DNA of 62,888 nucleotides, counting the filler, from Intoshia linei (lineage: Eukaryota > Animalia > Orthonectida), in the NCBI GenBank assembly GCA_001642005.1. It is 5 parts of 5 records of this genome, joined end to end, with 100 filler letters (N's around TTAATTAATTAA, not from the genome) between each part and the next. Parts side by side here need not be neighbours in the genome. Positions count along the whole stretch, not along the records: positions 35,575 to 56,941 come from LWCA01000656.1; 4 more parts are not named here. One strand, written 5' to 3'. Under the pieces are notes generated by a model. It was given only the letters and a program-made list of their open reading frames with translations, made no database searches and was not told the DNA's origin. Positions 35,575-56,713 of this stretch are shown piece by piece. The translations under genes were made by a program, and so were the position numbers. How positions within the stretch are numbered: position 1 is the first letter of the stretch; the number at the start of each line of letters is the position of its first letter.

Positions 35575-36115
35575 GAAAATTGTTCATAAATTCAAAGAAA
35601 CTGGGTCGGTCGCAGATGTGAAAACACCCTTGCGTACTCGTTTAATCTGTTCAGCTGAAAACATTGCTGCAGTGTGCGAGAATGTGGCCGAGAAACCAGG
35701 CACCTCTATTCGCCATCGCGCATAGGAATTGAACCTTTCCACAACCACGTTACATCGAATTTTGAAGAAAGATTTATCTCTACATGCTTACAAAATTCAA
35801 TTGACTCAAGCAATCAAGCCTGCTGACCATTTGAAGCGTCGTACATTCGCAGATTGGGTAAGAGTAAGGTCTATGCCAACAAGCTAACAACAATTGAACA
35901 GCTGAAGGAAGAGATAATAAGGCATATTGGTGAGATGTCATAAAAAATTTTGACCATCGAGTGTAAGTGTGCCGCCGAAGGGTTGGGCGATATTACTTTT
36001 CACACATAATTGCCATGCGCCAAATAACATAATTCCATAAAAAAATCAATAAAATTTACCCATTAACATCGTTTTATTTACTGTTTTTATCGATCCGTCT
36101 TAATGAAACACCCTT
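35575..36115 (+). mobile_element. Internally deleted Tc1/mariner element (rosa/DUF4817-like)
   Basis: KFKETGSVAD, SIRHRA*EL, ILKKDLSLHAYKIQLTQ, jumping directly to VYANKLTTIEQLKEEI; end ATGAAACACCCTT followed by TA. Confidence 0.75.
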
Positions 36116-38088: not shown

Positions 38089-38458
38089 GCTAAAGTGTTG
38101 ATTAGGATATTGTAATAGTGAATAAAGGTGAAATTGATATAAAAAGTGTGGATTATGTAGTCAATTTCAATTTAAACTTACTTTTAAAATTTTGAAATGT
38201 TTAATATCAAAATTTAGAAATAATGAATTCAAAACCAATATTAAAACGGCGCAGCGTTATAATCGAAAAAGTTTGTTGTACCCTTGGTAATGTATAGAAA
38301 CTAAGTTACATTGTTTTTTGTGAATACATTATCTTTGTAGAATTATAATCTGACTACAGTAATTATTGTTGACATTGTACAAGCTGGTAATTAAGATTTT
38401 CAATAGAAATGCATATTTATCTTTAACGTAAATCTGCATGCTGTTTCACAAATCACAT

Positions 38459-38540
38459 GCCGCGGTGACCGAGTGGTTAAGGTGATAGATTCGAAATCTA
38501 TTGGGCTTTGCCCGCACAGGTTCGAATCCTGTCCGCGGCG
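38459..38540 (+). tRNA. tRNA-Ser (anticodon CGA)
   Basis: Acceptor GCCGCGG/CCGCGGC, anticodon arm ATAGA-TTCGAAA-TCTAT, long variable arm GGGC-TTT-GCCC, GGTTCGAATCC, then a T6 Pol III terminator. Confidence 0.97.
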
Positions 38541-41154
38541 ATTTTTTCTATCTCGATCTTGATTATCCATGTTGAATCAATATCCACTAAAACTTGAAAC
38601 ATCTGTCATTTTTGAGTTCATAAAATGATGTTTCAATGTTTATGTGATGAGTTATCAATGTTAGCTGGTTACAAGTAGAAATATGTTCTTATTCATTTTT
38701 TAAATACATTTTAATTAAAAGAAACAACATAAATGATGTTTCAAATGGATAATTATATAATAAGTATCCTACGGTTAAAAGTTTTTACCTTTGTCAATTT
38801 TTCCTGGAAATTTCGTTATCAGTCAAAAATTATGAATTCACTATTTTGACGAACACTGGAGGCTTCATTACGTTAATTTAATTAAACCTGATGTTTAAAT
38901 TGGTTTAATTGATTGATAAACTACTAAAACGGCACAAATTAAATAATTAAAAATACGGTAATTATCATAATTATTTATGAAATAACAATAAAATTGTTTA
39001 CATGTATGCATTGCTATGGAATTAATGTTTAGATGCATTTATTAGATGTAATAATGAATTCAGAAATAATTATATTTATTTAATGTGTACCGTTTTTACC
39101 ATAAATGAATTGATCAGAAAAATTTTTATACAAATAAATTTTAATTAATTATCTAATTCGATGTTTTTCCTATATTTTTGTAAATTTTTATCAAAATATT
39201 ACCTTGAAAAATATTATTTCATTAATTTATATCAATATTAATATTAATATTGTAGAAAAAAAACTTGTTGATTGTCAAGTGTGGATGGACACATTTTATT
39301 CTCTTTCTTTATTTCAATTCTGATTATAGAGGTCAGATTATGCTGAACTTTTCTCTATTGCCATGAACATACTACTTCCATTTCCAACATATATGCATCT
39401 AACTTTTCAACGTTAACAATAATAAAGACCAATTGCAGAAGATAACTAAACTGGAAAATCAATCTAAGGGTTCCTTAAAAAATAGAATTCTAATTTTATA
39501 AATATTTAATTTGATCAATAAATTACATCATTTCGTCTGTTGTTATTATTATTCAAATTATTTGTGAAATGTGGCCCTACAATTCGGCTAAATTAAATCT
39601 AATTAAATTATACACACATAATATTACAACTATTTTTACTAAAATCTATCCATATTTACTAAAATTATCCATATTTACTTAAAATACACTTTCACCAACC
39701 ATTTAGGGAAAATCCACTTATACAAATACCTAAGAAAAAAATTACTTTCCACAAACCCTTAAGGAAAAAATTCAGTCTTACCAACTCTAAAATAAAAAAA
39801 TCAGCTTTACCAAACCATTAGGAAAATTCCAGTTTTACCAACCCTTAAGGGAAAAATGGTTAGATTCCTAATTCAAAACCCAAAATAAAAAATCTGATTG
39901 TACCAACCCTTCTATTAAGAATAATAAAAATATTTTTTTGAAAAATCCGTTTTTATCAAATATTATGAGCATTAACTTTGTAATCCAAAATGGGGTCCGT
40001 ACACAATTTGAATCTGGAACCACTATATTGATCTAATACCACATACCATTTTGAAGTACTTTTATTCATTATCATCAAATATTTTTCGGTTTTACTTTTC
40101 TACATGTACATTAATATTTGGTAATGGATAATAGTGGTTTTTAGCCATTATTTTTCAATTATGAATTGTTTACTCAACCCTTTCTTCTTTGGTTTCATGT
40201 GAACACCAGACACGTGAGTAATATCAACTATGATTATTGTCTCATAAGCATAGAATAAATTCGACGCAATCCCTTAAGAGGGTCTCGGGTACAGTAGGAT
40301 TCGCTCTGGTAACAACTAATTATAAAATGATACATTTACACTTGTGTTGATGTGACTATATTTCTTAATTCTGCAGATGTATTGATCATTTACGTTATAT
40401 GTTTAATATTCAGAAACTAAATAAATGTATTAAAATCCCACGAGATTAAATTAAATTTCGACTTGGTTAAAATTAAATTATAAATGACAGATTATTATTG
40501 ACTAAAAAATGCCTATAACAAAAATTTCAAGTAAGTTGAAACGTACATGAGTTTTTAGCGTATTAAAACACAAATTTAGTCTAAATTCATAATTACTCTA
40601 AATTTTAGAAAGTAAACCTTTTTAAAATATATAAAGAAATTGGAACAATAAAAAATTACAATAAATATTTTAATATTGATTAATTATTATACAACAGAGA
40701 AAATTATTCTAACAATATAATATAAATAAATGTATGATTTATAAATTCATCAAAGAATCGTCATCATAGAATCCTCCTTTGCTAAAAAGAATATTTACAA
40801 AAGTAAATGTAAAAATCAGTAAACGACACGTGTTCTAAAAATTAATGTGTATGTACAAACTGTTCACAATCTAAAATTAAATTTTTAGTACATGTCGTAT
40901 TTCTGAATGTTGGAATGAAACACATAAGAATTGATGTAAACAATTGCTTTAAAAGTAGAACTACATTATTGTTAAATTTATGGTGTTAATAAAACTAAAA
41001 CTAGAATTTGGTAACAATTGACACAAAATTGAAAAGATTTTCCACTTGATTAAGTTGAAGAAAATTAAACGTTTCGTGTTGTGTTACTTGTAAACTATTC
41101 ACAATTTGATGCGATAAATATTATTTTAATAAAATAAAAAATTTGTTTTTGTAA

Positions 41155-41546
41155 TTACTTTTTAAGATATTTCCAATAATCATAACTTATCCAAGGAGCA
41201 TTCTAAAACATATATAAAAATTTCAATAATCAAACTTTCACAATTTTTCTGTTAATTGACCTCTAAAAGCCTCTTATTAAATTAAAAAAAATTTATAAAT
41301 ACCTTTGGAATCAAAAACCTCTAAAAATAATGAATTCAATAATATTACATTTTACCTTTGGAAACAGGTACCTCTATGAAAAAATGAATTAAAAGGTAAA
41401 AATATTTATGAAAATGTACCTTTTGTATATCCTCCAAATCATCATTGTTTATACTCGAAGCCCTAAAGGTTTATAACAATAAACAAATAATATTACATGT
41501 TTAACATTACTATCGTAAATAGTATCAAGATTAAGCAAAATTTCAT
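41155..41546 (-). CDS. Putative neuropeptide precursor built from microexons (67 aa)
   Basis: Six exons with GT-AG introns of 33-46 nt give MKFCLILILFTIVMLNMASSINNDDLEDIQKRYLFPKRFLIPKRSINRKIVKNAPWISYDYWKYLKK*: signal peptide, acidic spacer, three KR sites. Confidence 0.7.
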
Positions 41547-42504
41547 CTTTAAATTTAAACGTTGAAATAAAAATGATGTATAAAAGTATTTAAAAATAGA
41601 CTGAAAAATCTAGATTTAAATAACACTTGTGTTGATAAAATGGATATGAAATTAACGAAAAAATTTTAAAATGCAATATATTTTATAATTACTTGAGTGG
41701 TTAATAAATGGATTCAAATGTAATTTTGAAAATTGTATGTTATTGTCACAATTTGGTCGATAATTATTATTTTAAACTTAATTAGTACGTTTTATTTATA
41801 AATATTTGTATTGATTTATAAAACAATGCTGTTAAATGACAAAAATTACATTTAAAATGCGTTTGTAATGTTCTCAAGTATGCTTTGATAAACACTGCAT
41901 ATTATTTATAGAAAGTGAAATGATTTTGTTTTAACAAATGATTTTATTGATTTTTACATTTACGTCTTATATTAAGAATTTTTACAAGATATATTGTAAC
42001 ATTATAAATTTTAACGAGTCAAATTTACAATTGTAGTAGTTTTATTATATACAATTTATAATGTATTCTTTTTATATTTTATTTTTTATATATGTATTTT
42101 ATATTTTTATCAATAATCTGGAATAAATCAAATTCTATTGCAATTGAACAGAACTGTATACCAAACATTTTAAAATACAGAATGGCACGTTAATTTACTT
42201 GCATTAAATATAAATCAGATAAATATTAGAATTTTAATGGAATATAATTATAATTAACTCACATGATACATTTAACAGAGAAAAACGTTAAATCATTAAA
42301 ATTAATGCAACGTGTCAGATTTTGAAAAGTATCTTAACATATTTTAATGGATAAAAAAATATTTAAGATTTATCATTACATTGTTTATTATCTATACATT
42401 TATTTATACTCAAGTTAAATATATATTTTAATTTATATAAGTTAGGATTTAATTAAAAATGTATGTGTTTGTTCTAGTAAATATATAAATTCAAACCTCA
42501 TAGT

Positions 42505-43299: not shown

Positions 43300-44039
43300 T
43301 AGGGCAGTTTTTTATGGCAAAATACTATTTTTTATATGATAATCAGCACGAAATTACAAGCATCATGATATCAATATTATATTTATTAATTAGCTAATTA
43401 ACAATTTATAAAGTCAATAAATGCCATTAAATGCCATAAAGTCAATATTTTTTTTAAAGGATATTCGACTTAAAAAAATGATATTCATGATATAATGAAC
43501 AATAAAATTGAACAAATACCACCTTATCTATACAATTTATTAAGAAAAGCGCCATCTACCACAAATAGTGTTGGACGTAGTTTCAGTTTGTTAAAAAAAT
43601 TGCTAACTAAACAGGCAATTTTTACCAGATAATGTTAAGAAGTATATTATGTTATACTACAATAAACTTTAATAATTTTCAACATCTCTAACATCACACA
43701 ATAAGAATTACATCGTTTGTTTCATTTGCAGTTTTTTATTATTCATATATATTATTACACGCATAAATATTGTTTATTTTAAGTTTTATTCATATTAATT
43801 TATTATGTAAAGTGACCGACACCATCATGATCGGGGCCTATGCGAATATTAAAATTAAGGTGTTTTAAATATTGTATTGATTTAATTTAAGGCCTACGAA
43901 AAGAAGGTTTGGGGAACGGTAGATTCAGTTGGTATTAACCATATAAACAAACAAGGATTTTAAAATCAGATAAAGTCAGTAAATTTAATTTTTAGGTCAG
44001 TTTTTTTGTTATTCTATAGGTCAATAAAAAATTGCCATA
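43300..44039 (+). mobile_element. hAT deletion derivative retaining a dimerization-domain remnant
   Basis: Ends TAGGGCAGTTTTTTAT...ATAAAAAATTGCCATA; internal APSTTNSVGRSFSLLKKLL. Confidence 0.6.
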
Positions 44040-44559
44040 ATTTGATATATATAAAAATGATAATAACAAAGTTGTATTAATTTGTTGTTATAGTTTTAAT
44101 TTAAATTTTAAACAAATTGTTTTAAAAATGATAATTTATAAAAAATACACATTCTAATATAAAAATTTTAAATTCATCAATATTATGATAATTTTCAATT
44201 TCAAAATCTTATATCTTCACGGCTTAAAACCACAAATTTATATAAAAATGAAAAAAGTTTTAAAATTTTAAAAAAAATTCAGAAGATACAATAAGATAAG
44301 TTACATTCTGTTAACACAAACAAAAAATATCAATATGAAAAAGTGATGCCTTGATGGTCATAAAAGCACTTTAATATTCATTTTTTTTATTAATTAATGT
44401 AAATAATTTAAAATAAAGAATTTATAATTTAATTTTTGAAAATATTTTATTAAAACAAAAAATGTAAATTAATTAACTGTCCAAAAATTAAAAAAAGATT
44501 ATTCTGATACAGCTTATTCCAGTTGATATAAATACAAAATTTGAACCCCAGAAATCTAC

Positions 44560-46050
44560 TCATTCCCAGTAAAAAATAATTTTTAATATATTGGAGTTAT
44601 TTAAAATTAGCCAACATCACAAATGTAATTGGGAGCAGTGATGTAGATTCATTTCTGTGGTGTGCCATCGGCCAAGTGTTAACATTTCAGAAAAAAGAAA
44701 TTAACATTTTATATCCATTTCTAAGGATGATTTACTGTACTTATATTTTAAGGTGGTTTTGTTAACTTTAATTTTTTTAAAAACTATTGAAATGAATATT
44801 TTCTGTACAGGGCTGGGGAAAAGTTTTGTAGACGATATATTTTATAATTAGATGAAAACCCAGAGGCAAACATTGAATACCAAAAATCATATGACAATAA
44901 TGAAACCAATAACCAAAAAAAAAAATGAAATCTAAAATATGTAATATTGATACGGACAAAGAGTGTATCCAGTCTTCTAATAAAGTTGAAGATGTAAATT
45001 ATGTCAATTTAGAGTCTGAATTTCAGACATGTATAATTATTAACAATAACCTTATTTAGATAAATACCAACGATCTTTGTGTATCAACAAAAAAAAATAC
45101 TGATGAGATGTATATAATTTCATACATAGAAAATGTTAATTTCGCGTATTAAATACTGGTATACATACATAGTGACTACATATTACTGTCACTTATTAAT
45201 TAAGAATAAATAAAGTTATGAATCAATACATTTAATATTTTAAATATCTAAATTAACGATAAAATGGATAAATCAAGCCTAGAAGGTAATTTAAAAAATA
45301 TACATACATAATAATGAACACTGCAGAATCTCCAGTGGAGATATTAAATTTGTTATATTATATCGATATTAACACTATATAATAATAGTTAATAGGGATA
45401 AGCCGCATCAGAATATCAAATATTTTCCCTAGGCGATAGCTATCGCAGACTGTATACTTATGTAAAAAATGTTTATGCAAGTATAAGTCCAAAAAGTTAT
45501 TTGATATAAATTTTGTCAAAATTTTCAATCATTCAATTTTTTTGAGGTGGGGTTATCTAAAAAAATAATCACCATCACAAAAGTAGCTGGAAAACTGATT
45601 TAGATTCATTTCTGTGGTGTGCCTTAGGTCAAGACTCTTGACTCAAGAGTTAAAATTTCAGAAAAAGCCGAATTAATATTTTTAATCTGTTTCTAAGGGT
45701 GATTGAAATAATTATACTTTGAAGGTTATACAGTATTTGAAGGTGGTTTTATTATCTTTAATTTTAAAGAATAATTTAATTTTTAAAGAACATTTAGCAT
45801 GTAAATTAATATGTTCTTCCTGGAATGGCTGTATTTTCTTTACAGGGTTGGGCAAAAGTTTACTAACGATATATTATATAATTAGATGCCAAACCTGAAA
45901 AAACTAACGAAAAGGGAGAGTCGAAAATTACATAAGAATAATCAGAAAACTATACAAATAATAAAACCAATCATATCTAAGAAAAAAATAAAATCTAAAA
46001 TAGGTAATATGGGCAAAGAGCTTATCCAATCTTTTAACAACGTTCTAGAT
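44560..46050 (+). repeat. Diverged ~450-bp direct duplication with coding character
   Basis: Blocks ~44560-44995 and ~45540-46050 share TAGATTCATTTCTGTGGTGTGCC, ATTTCAGAAAAA, TACAGGG(C/T)TGGG and AAATCTAAAATA in the same order. Confidence 0.8.
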
Positions 46051-48929: not shown

Positions 48930-51900
48930 CAGTCTATTTTCCTGACAAACTTGTTTGATATTTTTGGTTTCAGCTATCAATAAATAACATAGGTTTTTGA
49001 GAGAATCGAACAAATCAGTAACAAGTTCACACGAAAATCCAGATATACATTCTTTATACTTGTCTACATCACACAAAAGAACCAAACCACCTAAACACAC
49101 ATTTTATAAGAAAAACGAACATTACCACTGACTGTATACTTGAATTGGCAAATATGTTCAAATATAATAGCGTGAAACGCTCTACCAAATTCTGTATAAA
49201 TTTCATAAATATTTTGACCATCAAAATTTTCCCTCAATAGAGACACCACTTGATGAAAAAAATTGAAAACCTGGCTACTTGTCTAAAAAGTTGAAAACGA
49301 ATATGTAAAATGAAATACCTTTGTGCACTCAATATTAACATGATCCTTCTCGCTAATAATAAAATCAGATTTTTTTTGAAAACTGTAAAGAATATTGCGT
49401 ATAGTTTTAACGGAAGATTTGATAAATAATCCTAGACCTTCATTAATTAAAAATTCCATTCGTGATATGAAATCTTCATTATATTCAATAACTTCAGAAA
49501 CACACTTTGAACCAATTCCTTCCTTAATGTTTGGTAAAAAAGCTGCCTTCATATTATTATCATAGAGAGAATACACTTCAATCACGTTTTGAACAGTTCT
49601 AAAAAACTCTAAATCGGAGACATTGCAATTTTTTATTGGGAAACTTGCAGGAATATAACCAACAACACTTTCCAAAGCGTAAAGTATGTGTTCATCTCCA
49701 ATACTAATAATTAAAAATTTGAGAATCTTCGAAACTTGTTCGTAATGTTGAACAGATCCATAAATTAAGATATCATTTGATCTGGTCATGGCTGGTTTGA
49801 CTAAATTTATAATTCCTACTACCACATCCACGGAAACTAGCATCTGATTACTACTTCTTCGTCTTAAATTTGATCGTAACATTGACTGAACACCCTTTTT
49901 ATTTTGAAAACTGATATCTCTGCGATGGTTCACTGTATCGTAATATTCCATCAACATTTTACTGACTTCCCTTCGAATGAAGTCCATTTCTTGGCTAAAT
50001 TATTTCAATGTACACCATATGTCTAAATTTTAAATCAGTGCGACCAAACTTTTTTAGTTGCAGACAGATAACCTCGAAGTAAATAAAATACAAGTCTCAT
50101 TGTCAATTTCGATTTGTCACACCTATATCTGGCAAAGGTAGATGATTCACATTAAAATTATAAAAATATGACCAATATTACTATTATTAACACCTAGTGC
50201 CGAACCTACCATACCCGAAACAGCTATTCAGGGAGGTATTGACGAAATTTTTGTAAAATTTGGTATTCAATAATGTAATTTTTAATTATCATAACTATTT
50301 TGTGGACTATTTAAACCAGGGATTCTCAACCTTTTATTGAATTATCGCAAATCAAATTAAAAAAATTATATTTTTTCAAAATTATCGCCCTTCCAAAAGA
50401 GTTTATCATGGGTTCCTTAATAATTAAAAACTAGCAAAAAATGTTTAAACTAGTACTTTAGTGCATTAAAATAATTTATGATACAGTATATTTAACCGAA
50501 TTTTTAAAATTAGTTTTAACAAATTGCTTGCTTGTTAATTTGACTTACTTTTTCTTTACTTTTTTTTTTGCTTTGAAAAATCATTTTGGCCAACTGTCAG
50601 TGACACAGGAGGCTAATCGGTGAAAACCCATAACAAATATACTCGAATGTTATATAATATACTAATTAATTTAATTTTTCATATTTAATTAACTTTGTTT
50701 CAATTTGATACGTGTTTTTATAAGTGTAATGTTGTGTGACCACTGTGGTCACACTGCGAGTATTAGGGTTAATGGAAAAATCTCCTTGTTCCAATATTTT
50801 TTTGAAAAACCATATTTTACAAAATCTTATGGCAAAAAACCTTAAATTTTTTCATAAATGTTTTATATTTCATGTTTCCTTTGGGTCCAAAAAATAAATA
50901 TACCGTACACTATTTGAACCGGGAACCACTGACTTAAACTGTATACAGTGTATAATGTATGTTAAATGGATTTAAAAATGGTCATTTACATTTAAATACT
51001 GCAAATAGAGACTACAACGAAATAAGTTTGGCTAGCCCTGATTTACACGTTATTCTAGAATAGCATGTAAATAAAAAAGTTTCAATTACTTTGAGTAGAT
51101 TTTCAGCATTTCACCAAATATCGAATGTATTAAATTACTTATTAAGTTTGGTTTTTTCGTCAAATACGTTTTGATGGTTTCTCCAATTTTAATAGATCTA
51201 TTATTAAATTATTTGAATTAATTGTTTAATGAATATAACTCTTTAAATAAACGATGTAAATTTTTCAACTTTTTTTCTAAATCATTTTCATTTGTTACAC
51301 ATTGATCCAACATGATCTATACAATTGATTATAGTTACATTCTAGCATAAGTAAGATGTTCCAAAATATTTTTTACCACGGACCACTTAAATCTAATTTC
51401 CAAGAAAAATTACCAAATACTATCATTACTCTACATTTTGCAAGATATTATTAACAAATAATATTCTACAATAAAGTCTTGAAAATTGAAAAAATAAATT
51501 TATAATTCCGAGAAATTTTTTCATTTGATAGACAAGAAACCTTAAACTCAGGATTTGCATTTTTCCGGTCAAAAACGCATTTTAATACTTCATCATCCAA
51601 AATTTTTTAATTAATATAAATTTTTGTAGGTCCGTGCAGTTTTAATTTAAATTTAAACCCACTGATATAACTCTTATGTTGTTTTTCAAAATATTTAAAA
51701 AATGGTGACCATAATTTGATCAAAGTTTTCCCTCACAAGAAATACATATTACCTGAATATTATTGAAAAGAAATTTGATTAAAAGTTCTAGTGAATCATC
51801 GTATTTCTTAAACAAAAGTTTTGCCAACTTGTAACCACTTTCACATGTATCTAAAATGCTAGAAAATTGATCTTTACCTTGTAGTTGACTTTTCTGTAAC

Positions 51901-53292: not shown

Positions 53293-56200
53293 ATGAGTCA
53301 TACAAAATTAAACATTTTGGTACAAAAATGCGACGAATTAAAATTGAAAATTACACTTTTGGGTATATTTATAATTTGTACAGTTTTATACAGGTTTAGA
53401 GGGAGATAGCAAATCGTCATATGAAAGTTCAGAATGGAAGCAAAAAAATAATCGTCATAATGTTAAAAAGTTAAGAGATGAATATGATGAACTTTACAGT
53501 TTACGAGCAAATAAAATGATGGTTTATTTTTATCTAGTTTATGTTTTCAGTTTATTATGTTTAGGCTGATTCTGAATTAGTTGCAAAATCTTTAAATGAT
53601 GTACCAGAAGAAAAAAAATGCTTTAGAAATAAATCTGGACTCGTAATCTCATAGATTTTTACTTTCTTTATTATTTAGGTGGCTTTAGATTTAATCAATA
53701 ATAAACACAAGTATTATGTTAATCAATTAAATTACTTGAAGTTTCTCACTGAAAAATACAAAAAAAATCAAAATTTGTTAAAATCAAAACATGAGGAAAT
53801 GCAACAGGAGAATTCCGAGATTAAAGAAACTAAACAAGATGAAACTGCTGTTTCAAAGGTATATTATAATATGAAATTAAATTAAATTTAATGGATTGAT
53901 TTAAACATTGATTTTATAATGAAAATAAATTGCTTAAAACCTCAGCCTCCTAGAAAATAGATAATTGAAAATTAAAATTATTTCATAATTTTGCCAGAAT
54001 AAGGAAAAATTTATTTTTAACAATCTCTGTTATATAATTTTAACAGGCCCTAGGGCCTAAGGTTTGCAGAAAGTGTTCACATAATTTATTTAATTTATTT
54101 TCAATTTTATTAGGGTATTCAGTGAAGGTAATTTGGTGATTTTTTATATGAACAATTTGATAAGTTAAAAGAAATAATTAAATTCTTTTAATTTTTTATA
54201 TATAAAATTATTGAAAGTTGTATTTTTCTCTAAAATTTTCGTAAAATTGATTTTTTATAAACGGGTAATGCATCTTATGTATAATATATTTTTGTTATTT
54301 TTAGTTACTGGGAGTGAATTTTTTCATTAAATTTTATAAAAATGGGTTTTTTCTATAAAAAAGTATTTGAAAGCTTATATTTCTCTAAAATTTTCAAAAA
54401 ATTGATTTTTTATCAACGGATAATGGCTATTAGGTATAATAGGATTTTTTTTATTTTTTATTGTATTGGATTTTTCCCTTAAATATTGATGAAATGGTAT
54501 TTTTTATATATTTGATATGGTGGTATTTTTAAACATTGGTAAAATTATACTTTACTCTGAAAGTTTGATAGCATTATATTTTTTATAGATTTTTTTCTTA
54601 GCAGAATAGCATATCTTTAAATTTTTAGTAAGTAGATTTTTGTGTATAAACGTTTTAAAACGAATTATTTATAATAACTGAGTTGTACAATCTGATTTTG
54701 ATGTCTTTGTATATTTTAAATTTAAGGATACCCGTACATTGGAAAACAAATTTGAAAAGAGCAAATTACGATACACAGAAGCATTGCATATTTTTCAGGC
54801 TTATGTAGCTATCAAACAGGACATGCAACAAAATAATCAAACATTTGACCAACAACTGGACCAGTTGGAGAATTCTATTAAAATGTTTGGACACTACATT
54901 AAAATTTAAATAAACTATAGTAAAAATTAAAAAAAAATTAGATCCGAAGCTGAACACGATAAACAATTTAAAGTTAACCAACAAGCTACTTGTAGTAGAG
55001 ATATTGCCATTACTAACTTGGAAAAATGTGAAAAAGAAATTCATTCAGCTAGAAAAGAACGTGAAATGAATATTTCAAAAGTACGAAAACGGGCAGAAGA
55101 AAAAAAACTTCAGTATACCAAAAGGATTGTAATAAATTAATTTTTTAATTTATAATTTTTAAAAAAGGGCGAACCTCAAATACTTAATGATACAAATACC
55201 GGTACAATGACACTAGATGACAATGATGAATTTGGAATAAGTAAAATATCATTATACGCACAAGCTATAACAAAAATTAAACAGGCGACTGGGGTTACCG
55301 ACACAAAGGTTTAATTTTCATTCAAATATTTTTACTTATTTTTATTGTAACTATTTTTTTATTATATGGGTAGGAAGTTGTGATACGTTTTGAAAATCAA
55401 GGTGAATCGAAGAATCGACTTGAAAATATTAAAAATGAAAATAAAGAAAATACCACTAAACTTGAAGAGAAATGCATAAATTTAATTCAAGAATTTAATC
55501 AAATGAGATACTCGGGAAATGACAAAATAGTAGAGTAAGTTTTTTTTCATTTTATTTTTATATTCAATGATTCATTTTCTGATAAAATTTTTACAAATAA
55601 CCTAAAATCACGTAAAGCATAATTATTAATTATTAAAATGTAACAATGTTTTATTAATGCTACTTTTTAAATAGAGCTCAAATAGTTTTGGAGGAAAAAC
55701 GAAAAGAATTTAGTGTTATTAAATTTAATTTAAAAGAGGTTAATGAAAATTTGGATATGTCTTTGGCTTTACTTTTATCTATTAAATCTGGTTTAAATCA
55801 TTTATTGGACAAGCTGCAACCGGTTACATTTTTTATTTATTTATTAACTTTACAGAGTCATCTCTCTGATTAGTAGATCATTAATTTACTTACTTTTGGT
55901 AAAAATGATATTCAAACAAAAGGTCTATCAAAAATTCTTCATTTAAAAAAAGTAAAGATACATTTTTTCTTTTCTTTATATGTATATGATCTCAATTGGG
56001 ACCTGCTTGTATATAAATTTTAATCTTTATTAGTATAAACTGAATACGTGAATTTAATTTTCTGTATTTCAGATATTTATAAACTTGCTAAACTGTTTAA
56101 AACAGTGAAACACAAAACGCGCCCATCTACTAATAGTTTATGCGTTTTATAAATTTTCTAATTTTCAACAAAAATTGATTGGATTTTCTAAATATTGTCT

Positions 56201-56713
56201 TGCTGGTCACAGGAACTTTTTTTGGAGAATATCTACTTTAGGTTACTATTGATGAAAAGATATAGCAGTATTATAATTGTGTATTTACTTAAATGTGCCG
56301 GGAATATTATTATATTTTAATTACAAAATTTTAAGAATGCAAATGATTTGGAAAAATTAAAATCGCGAGATTCTGAAAAATACTCATTTCAACAATTATC
56401 CTTATGTGATGAAAAAATTGATGAAATCATGTTAGAACTTAAAGATGACGATATCAACTCTACCTGGAATTTATTGAATCAAAATGAAGTAATTTTTTTC
56501 AATTTAGTTTTACTATTAGCTTAACTAAAAAATTAGCTTTATTTAAAAAGGTTGCCAATATTATAAAATTTATAACACTGAACCAATTGGGTTAAATTTT
56601 TTATTTATTTATTTTATTTCCAATATAGTACATCAGTATGATTGAATTGGGACAACCAGAATACAATACTCATATAAAACTAAAAATTAGAAAAAAGGAA
56701 AATGCATTTGATG
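53293..56713 (+). CDS. ODAD3: Outer dynein arm docking complex subunit 3 (CCDC151), 3' end missing at the gap
   Basis: ELKLKITLL|GLEGDSKSSYESSEW; RTLENKFEK; ITKIKQATGVTD; PEYNTHIKL. Confidence 0.8.

Follow-up and report, generated by a model that had tools for sequence, protein, structure and literature searches.

The minus strand of Intoshia linei (Orthonectida) contig LWCA01000656.1 (assembly GCA_001642005.1) at positions 40739-41610, counted along the 62,888 nucleotides of DNA that were analysed (the window), most probably represents a transcribed, multiply spliced gene for small, cysteine-free, strongly basic secretory proteins of 65-122 amino acids. There is good support for a genuine gene here that is alternatively spliced and encodes small basic secretory proteins. 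In all isoforms, residues 1-20 would form a cleavable signal peptide, followed by an acidic spacer of 10 residues and a basic module of short phase-0 exons, made up of two duplicated 18-nt cassettes, R-[YF]-L-[FI]-P-K, and a 27/21-nt exon, with Lys-Arg at every junction. After the aromatic-rich exon 6, alternative splicing would pick one of three C-terminal tails (giving products of 67, 122 or 80 aa), and a 6-nt in-frame shift of one donor would drop Val-Lys.

The gene lies in DNA of about 21% GC and is not hidden, as the sequence-only reading had it. GenBank already annotates a minus-strand gene at 41546-40739 that encodes 71 aa and starts from the same ATG at 41546, and the gene is thus previously annotated yet uncharacterised. 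The remark that the ORF track misses it does hold, no mechanical ORF of at least 50 aa spanning the place. By arithmetic from the annotated ends and the proven first and last introns, the 71-aa length matches exons 1, 2, 3, 4 and 6 plus the last exon, so that the GenBank model is most simply one with both microexons in and the 27-nt exon 5 missing. The annotation is probably incomplete, in that it apparently lacks both this exon and the longer isoform. Within the literature collection searched, no paper ties Intoshia to microexons or convertases.

Evidence for splicing comes from contigs of three public runs, X1-X3, whose type is unrecorded. We recognised them as RNA assemblies by their spliced joints, because contigs of the neighbouring poly(A) polymerase gene are without its introns (CT..AC joints, plus strand); an exon of this neighbour is 99% identical to OAF67450.1 (571 aa, Intoshia linei), and the neighbour is spliced in the same contigs. 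At the gene under study, introns 1, 5 (from two donors), 6 (to two acceptors) and 7 are seen as joints in RNA contigs. The splicing proposed from the DNA is therefore borne out in part at the transcript level, introns 1 and 5 being joined in all three runs, whereas no junction of an 18-nt exon is among the joints listed.

On the minus strand, RNA contig coverage defines a 5' untranslated region at 41547-41610, whose upstream end is approximate and would lie near 41596-41610 from depth arithmetic; one X3 contig extends 5' to 41672, and no ATG occurs upstream of the start from 41672 to 41547. The coding part of exon 1 (41497-41546) begins with the ATG at 41546-41544, a start shared with the annotated gene, and encodes most of the signal peptide. 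Intron 1 (41463-41496; 34 nt, GT..AG) corresponds to a joint from 41461 to 41496 (cut +1) in X1, X2 and X3. Exon 2 (41420-41462) carries the end of the signal peptide, the acidic spacer and a 3' AAG codon for Lys, and is covered by a contig alignment of 42(+1) letters that stops at 41420. Intron 2 (41374-41419; 46 nt, AAG/GTACAT...CATAG/AGG) is read from the sequence, its donor being backed by the alignment end at 41420 and its acceptor not being among the RNA joints listed. It is followed by the putative microexon 3 (41356-41373; 18 nt, phase 0, R-Y-L-F-P-K), by intron 3 (41321-41355; 35 nt, AAG/GTAAAA...TTTAG/AGG), which has no joint among those listed, and by the paralogous microexon 4 (41303-41320; 18 nt, phase 0, R-F-L-I-P-K), both microexons being predicted to be included in the mRNA. 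Intron 4 (41263-41302; 40 nt, AAG/GTATTT...TTTAG/AGG) has an acceptor that is backed at exon 5 by alignments 29 and 23 letters long.

Exon 5 occurs in two forms. The 27-nt form (41236-41262), encoding R-S-I-N-R-K-I-V-K, is defined by a joint from 41202 to 41236 in three runs, and a 21-nt form without V-K (41242-41262), which uses an alternative donor at 41241, by a joint from 41202 to 41242 in X2 and X3. The two donors (GTGAAA and GTTTGA) lie 6 nt apart at 41236-41242 and add or remove Val-Lys in frame, with higher contig depth for the upstream one in X2 and X3. RNA joints and splice sites accordingly give an intron 5 of 33 nt (41203-41235) or, with the alternative donor, of 39 nt (41203-41241). 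The alignments beside these joints, of 29 and 23 letters, equal the 27-nt and 21-nt exons plus two letters each, and the two extra letters (AG) are accounted for because any upstream exon ending in AAG shares them with the intron. Together with the 42(+1) letters at exon 2, these lengths mean that the mRNA departs from the genomic sequence precisely at 41420 and rejoins it precisely at 41262.

At the sequence level, the six minus-strand exons that had been proposed (41546-41497, 41462-41420, 41373-41356, 41320-41303, 41262-41236 and 41202-41155) and their introns of 34, 46, 35, 40 and 33 nt, all GT..AG, read exactly as described, and the three KR codon pairs are indeed all split AAG/AGG by an intron. 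AAG closes exon 2 and each of the 18-nt exons, and AGG opens the 18-nt exons and exon 5, which yields Lys-Arg at each of the three phase-0 junctions. The proposed 3' end, a stop at 41157-41155, is wrong for the main forms. Exon 6 (41159-41202; 44 nt), which encodes an aromatic-rich peptide, ends in phase 2 (AA/) at 41159, where joints lead to 41094 in X2 and X3 and to 40781 in X1. With the donor G at 41158, the TAA at 41157-41155 is intronic, and the intron that holds it, intron 6 (41095-41158; 64 nt, joint 41094 to 41159 in X2 and X3), is removed in the better-supported contigs.

Three 3' arrangements were found, and their products were translated from exon combinations of the genomic sequence. 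Removal of the 64-nt intron leads into exon 7 (41002-41094; 93 nt, with an open frame, in contigs X2-10 and X3-16), intron 7 (40961-41001; 41 nt, GT..AG, joint 40960 to 41002 in all three runs) and exon 8, whose coding part (40885-40960), defined by RNA contigs and frame, ends with a TAA at 40887-40885 and which continues as 3' UTR to below 40752; the product is 122 aa, or 120 aa with the short exon 5. Removal of a 377-nt intron (40782-41158; joint 40781 to 41159 in X1) leads instead to an alternative last coding exon (40739-40781), whose stop codon, TAA at 40741-40739, also closes the GenBank model, and to a product of 80 or 78 aa. Retention of intron 6 gives a product of 67 aa, which the short exon 5 reduces to 65 aa; the 67-aa product of the sequence-only reading thus exists as an intron-retaining form, one low-depth X1 contig (record 3) being unspliced there, but it is minor, the main forms running into further exons. 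The frame stays open from the ATG across every exon combination. It is open for 108-122 codons across RNA-proven junctions, and in the long form exons 7 and 8 add 55 open codons, for which the probability by chance is about 1-3% in this AT-rich contig. We did not rank the isoforms by contig depth, contig means being flat and inflatable by foreign parts. The isoform sets shown differ between X1 and X2/X3, whose organism labels (coded) also differ; this hints at sample- or stage-specific splicing, although contigs cannot show that an isoform is absent.

The N-terminus common to these products is signal-peptide-like over residues 1-20 by a heuristic, with Lys2, a 13-residue h-region (mean Kyte-Doolittle value 3.25) and A-S-S at positions -3 to -1 before Ile21, in agreement with the signal peptide proposed earlier. 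The proposed acidic spacer is likewise present, with 4 of its 10 residues acidic before the first KR. The arrangement of dibasic sites between short peptides, KR-YLFP-KR-FLIP-KR with three KR and one RK in all, can be read in the sequence and depends on the predicted inclusion of the microexons. There are only two tetrapeptide copies between dibasic sites, no amidation Gly stands before any basic site, and the mature parts of the 67-aa and 122-aa products are without Gly. The mature part contains no Cys and has a pI of 9.5-10.

In the most likely mode of action, the protein would enter the secretory pathway and be cut at its KR sites by an enzyme of the furin/prohormone-convertase type, which would give short hydrophobic peptides and a larger C-terminal peptide. 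Such cleavage is plausible, since I. linei has at least one canonical GKR-bearing precursor (OAF70707.1), a small protein of the EP/CCHamide type of about 80 aa with a GKR site (supplement of PMC6617912). A role as a processed signalling-peptide precursor is a tentative assignment, given the same odds as that of an uncut cationic secreted effector or defence peptide, and the remaining probability goes to other roles. An uncut cationic effector or defence peptide, or a variable secreted protein resembling the products of micro-exon genes (MEGs), fits as well as a neuropeptide.

Should the protein act as an uncut secreted effector or defence peptide, its anionic propiece would be removed at the first KR, the cationic peptide would remain and splicing would vary its sequence; we hold this reading, too, only tentatively. 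The charge and pI of the protein speak for it, an anionic propiece ending in KR being followed by a strongly cationic peptide, with a net charge of +6 to +9 downstream of the first KR. Amphibian-type antimicrobial-peptide precursors consist of a signal peptide, an acidic propiece, KR and a cationic peptide. The order of signal peptide, acidic spacer, KR and cationic C-terminal part is the same here, a likeness taken from sequence alone, whereas the present locus has internal KR sites. The short symmetric exons and the proven alternative splicing of donor and tails also favour this reading, and they recall the MEGs of schistosomes, known from trematodes, which have 10-20 symmetric microexons of 6-81 bp and introns of 100-5000 bp and encode secreted, splice-varied proteins whose exons are multiples of three (PMC10526429). 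Compared by architecture, the two share a signal-peptide-like start that predicts secretion, very short exons with lengths that are multiples of three and alternative splicing (here through two intron 5 donors and three arrangements of the 3' end). All coding exons here are at most 93 nt long, and there are 7-8 in all. However, only three are symmetric (18, 18 and 27/21 nt), introns are tiny (33-64 nt, with introns 2-5 at 33-46 nt and hence outside the range of MEG introns), no paralogue of any exon was found within the 21-kb contig, and the organism is an orthonectid. In keeping with an effector, orthonectids live alternately as a plasmodium within the host and as free-living adults (PMC12249979). 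The difference between the isoform sets of X1 and X2/X3 points the same way, subject to the limit on what contigs can show about absence.

The sequence-only reading took the gene for a classical neuropeptide precursor, in which YLFP and FLIP would be bioactive peptides released in neurons and skipping or duplication of cassettes would tune their dose. This we consider unlikely. Its layout, in which a signal peptide and an acidic spacer precede repeated tetrapeptides flanked by KR, does conform to that of multi-copy neuropeptide and prohormone precursors (FMRFamide-type precursors and OAF70707.1 of I. linei), which are small and have a signal peptide, a spacer and KR-bracketed peptides. By the same comparison of layout it departs from them, as it lacks an amidation Gly, contains only two tetrapeptide copies whose sequences end in Pro and which are assigned to no known family, and has long non-repetitive tails on its main isoforms (55 residues in one of them); moreover, no cassette-skipping junction is among the joints listed. 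A Pro in front of K-R may make it harder for carboxypeptidase to remove the Lys. Proctolin, RYLPT, is a non-amidated peptide of arthropods. The R-Y-L-F-P of the first cassette resembles it and is likewise non-amidated, a four-residue likeness that can serve only as a lead, since processing logic and taxon differ. In the alternatively spliced peptide-hormone genes tachykinin PPT-A and calcitonin/CGRP, each peptide has an exon to itself. The nemertean Lineus longissimus has two EP splice variants (PMC6617912). Splicing at the present locus similarly selects peptide segments of the precursor, whereas the exons of those genes have ordinary lengths and contain the cleavage sites, and here each KR is built across a splice junction. 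Peptidergic signalling is present in I. linei (PMC6543705; PMC6617912), which has 32 rhodopsin-type GPCRs (PMC6543705), and expression of the gene, as judged by the weak measure of contig depth in whole-sample RNA, is well above that of the neighbouring housekeeping gene; both observations are in keeping with a neuropeptide role.

The cassettes would have no part in the protein if the 18-nt segments were not exons, exon 2 being joined directly to exon 5 and the duplicates being remnants within an intron. No junction touching an 18-nt exon is among the joints listed, as this account would have it; pieces of 18 nt are hard to align. The frame would survive a direct splice between exons 2 and 5, and the resulting 157-nt intron falls within the 33-377 nt spanned by the introns of this stretch. 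It is nonetheless improbable in view of the conservation of the pair. The two 18-nt phase-0 exons are paralogous, as had been proposed, with 14 of 18 nt identical, or 20 of 24 when three flanking bases on each side are included, and the 21 kb contain only two further matches of 20/24 nt or better at a spacing of 40-90 nt, a tandem repeat and an A/T run. The four differences between the exons include a synonymous change (CTG/TTG) and the conservative replacements Y/F and F/I. By comparison, the introns that flank the pair are no more alike than shuffled sequences (25 against 25.6 +/- 1.7 and 29 against 26.8 +/- 1.4), which implies that the duplication is old, with exons and splice sites preserved since. 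The duplicates thus retain 20 of 24 nt, both splice sites and an open frame amid randomised intron sequence, the splice sites of introns 2-4 (AAG/GTA and TAG/AGG) are as good as or better than those proven by RNA, and the length of the GenBank product fits inclusion of the microexons. From these sequence features, there is a reasonably strong case that the two 18-nt segments are real exons.

Several contigs behave differently around the cassettes. A contig of X2, covering 41236-41395 at depth 33, reads straight through introns 3 and 4 without splicing. In all three runs, contigs match the region of introns 3 and 4 and then join foreign sequence at 41279 and 41334, and one X1 contig leaves the genomic sequence above 41402. 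One of the foreign continuations is GC-rich (53% GC over 30 nt), and no source of the loose-end sequences at 41279, 41334 and 41402 was found within the 21-kb contig. They may derive from another haplotype or a paralogue (with different introns or another number of cassettes), from a transposon insertion or from chimeras.

That the splice model arose by chance in non-coding AT-rich DNA, or that the transcript is non-coding, is scarcely credible, as it is largely refuted by spliced RNA in three runs and further opposed by the 108-122 open codons over RNA-proven junctions and the signal-peptide-like N-terminus, even though the sequence permits stop-free GT-AG chains by the tens of thousands. We rejected a stop-free GT-AG chain as evidence: the chain that had been said to splice without stops does read open, but this has no weight alone, since 37,739 different GT-AG chains give an open frame of 216 nt in the same 808 nt.

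Elsewhere on the contig, RNA contigs splice 38182-38923/38951, 39265-39445 and 39527-40485 (minus strand) onto the poly(A) polymerase gene. The GT..AG introns of this transcribed region upstream of poly(A) polymerase (38182-40485) measure 92, 341 and 81 nt; the region contains no ORF longer than 51 aa and may belong to a long 5' UTR or to a non-coding transcript of its own. A tRNA-Ser(CGA) gene at 38458-38541 (plus strand), identified by ARAGORN and Rfam, lies antisense inside a transcribed exon of this region; the Rfam search returned this tRNA only. At 39635-39857, tandem 20-nt and 29-nt repeats, on which RNA contigs of lower identity pile up with back-joints and loose ends, constitute a dispersed, transcribed repeat family. 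The GC-richer (35%) contig edge at 35584-35941 contains short ORFs that by eye resemble the N-terminus of a mariner/Tc1-type transposase; these have no Pfam match at E<=0.01, and the segment probably represents a transposon in decay. The minus strand at 49283-49987 carries an exon of an exocyst Sec10 homologue (Pfam Sec10_HB, E 3e-20), and a run of K/E/N/Q-rich ORFs at 53679-56524 (plus strand) has the appearance of a gene for a coiled-coil protein. A 49-aa GenBank gene at 43827-44928 (plus strand), spread over 1.1 kb, was considered as a candidate of the same kind and rejected, its start being without signal-peptide character. Exons 7 and 8 of the secretory gene have no Pfam match.

Beyond the well-supported reading of an alternatively spliced gene for small basic secretory proteins, we can offer a more speculative model, which is unlikely to hold. 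Each 18-nt microexon would be a self-contained R-xxxx-K cassette in which KR arises only after splicing; alternative splicing, together with the number of cassette copies per haplotype, would set the number of peptides, and splicing at the 3' end would add tails specific to life stages. The product of such a splice-programmable precursor would be a lineage-specific molecule for signalling or for interaction with the host, in an animal whose nervous system is among the most strongly reduced on record.

Hardly anything has been learned about the secreted molecules with which orthonectids, parasitic spiralians of extremely simplified build, signal or act on their hosts. The locus provides a concrete, expressed candidate of unusual construction, with duplicated 18-nt cassettes, Lys-Arg junctions and proven alternative donors and C-terminal tails. 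If its KR sites are cut, it would be a new lineage-specific peptide precursor in which splicing as well as proteolysis defines the set of peptides; if they are uncut, it would be a secreted protein of the micro-exon type that arose independently of the schistosome MEGs.
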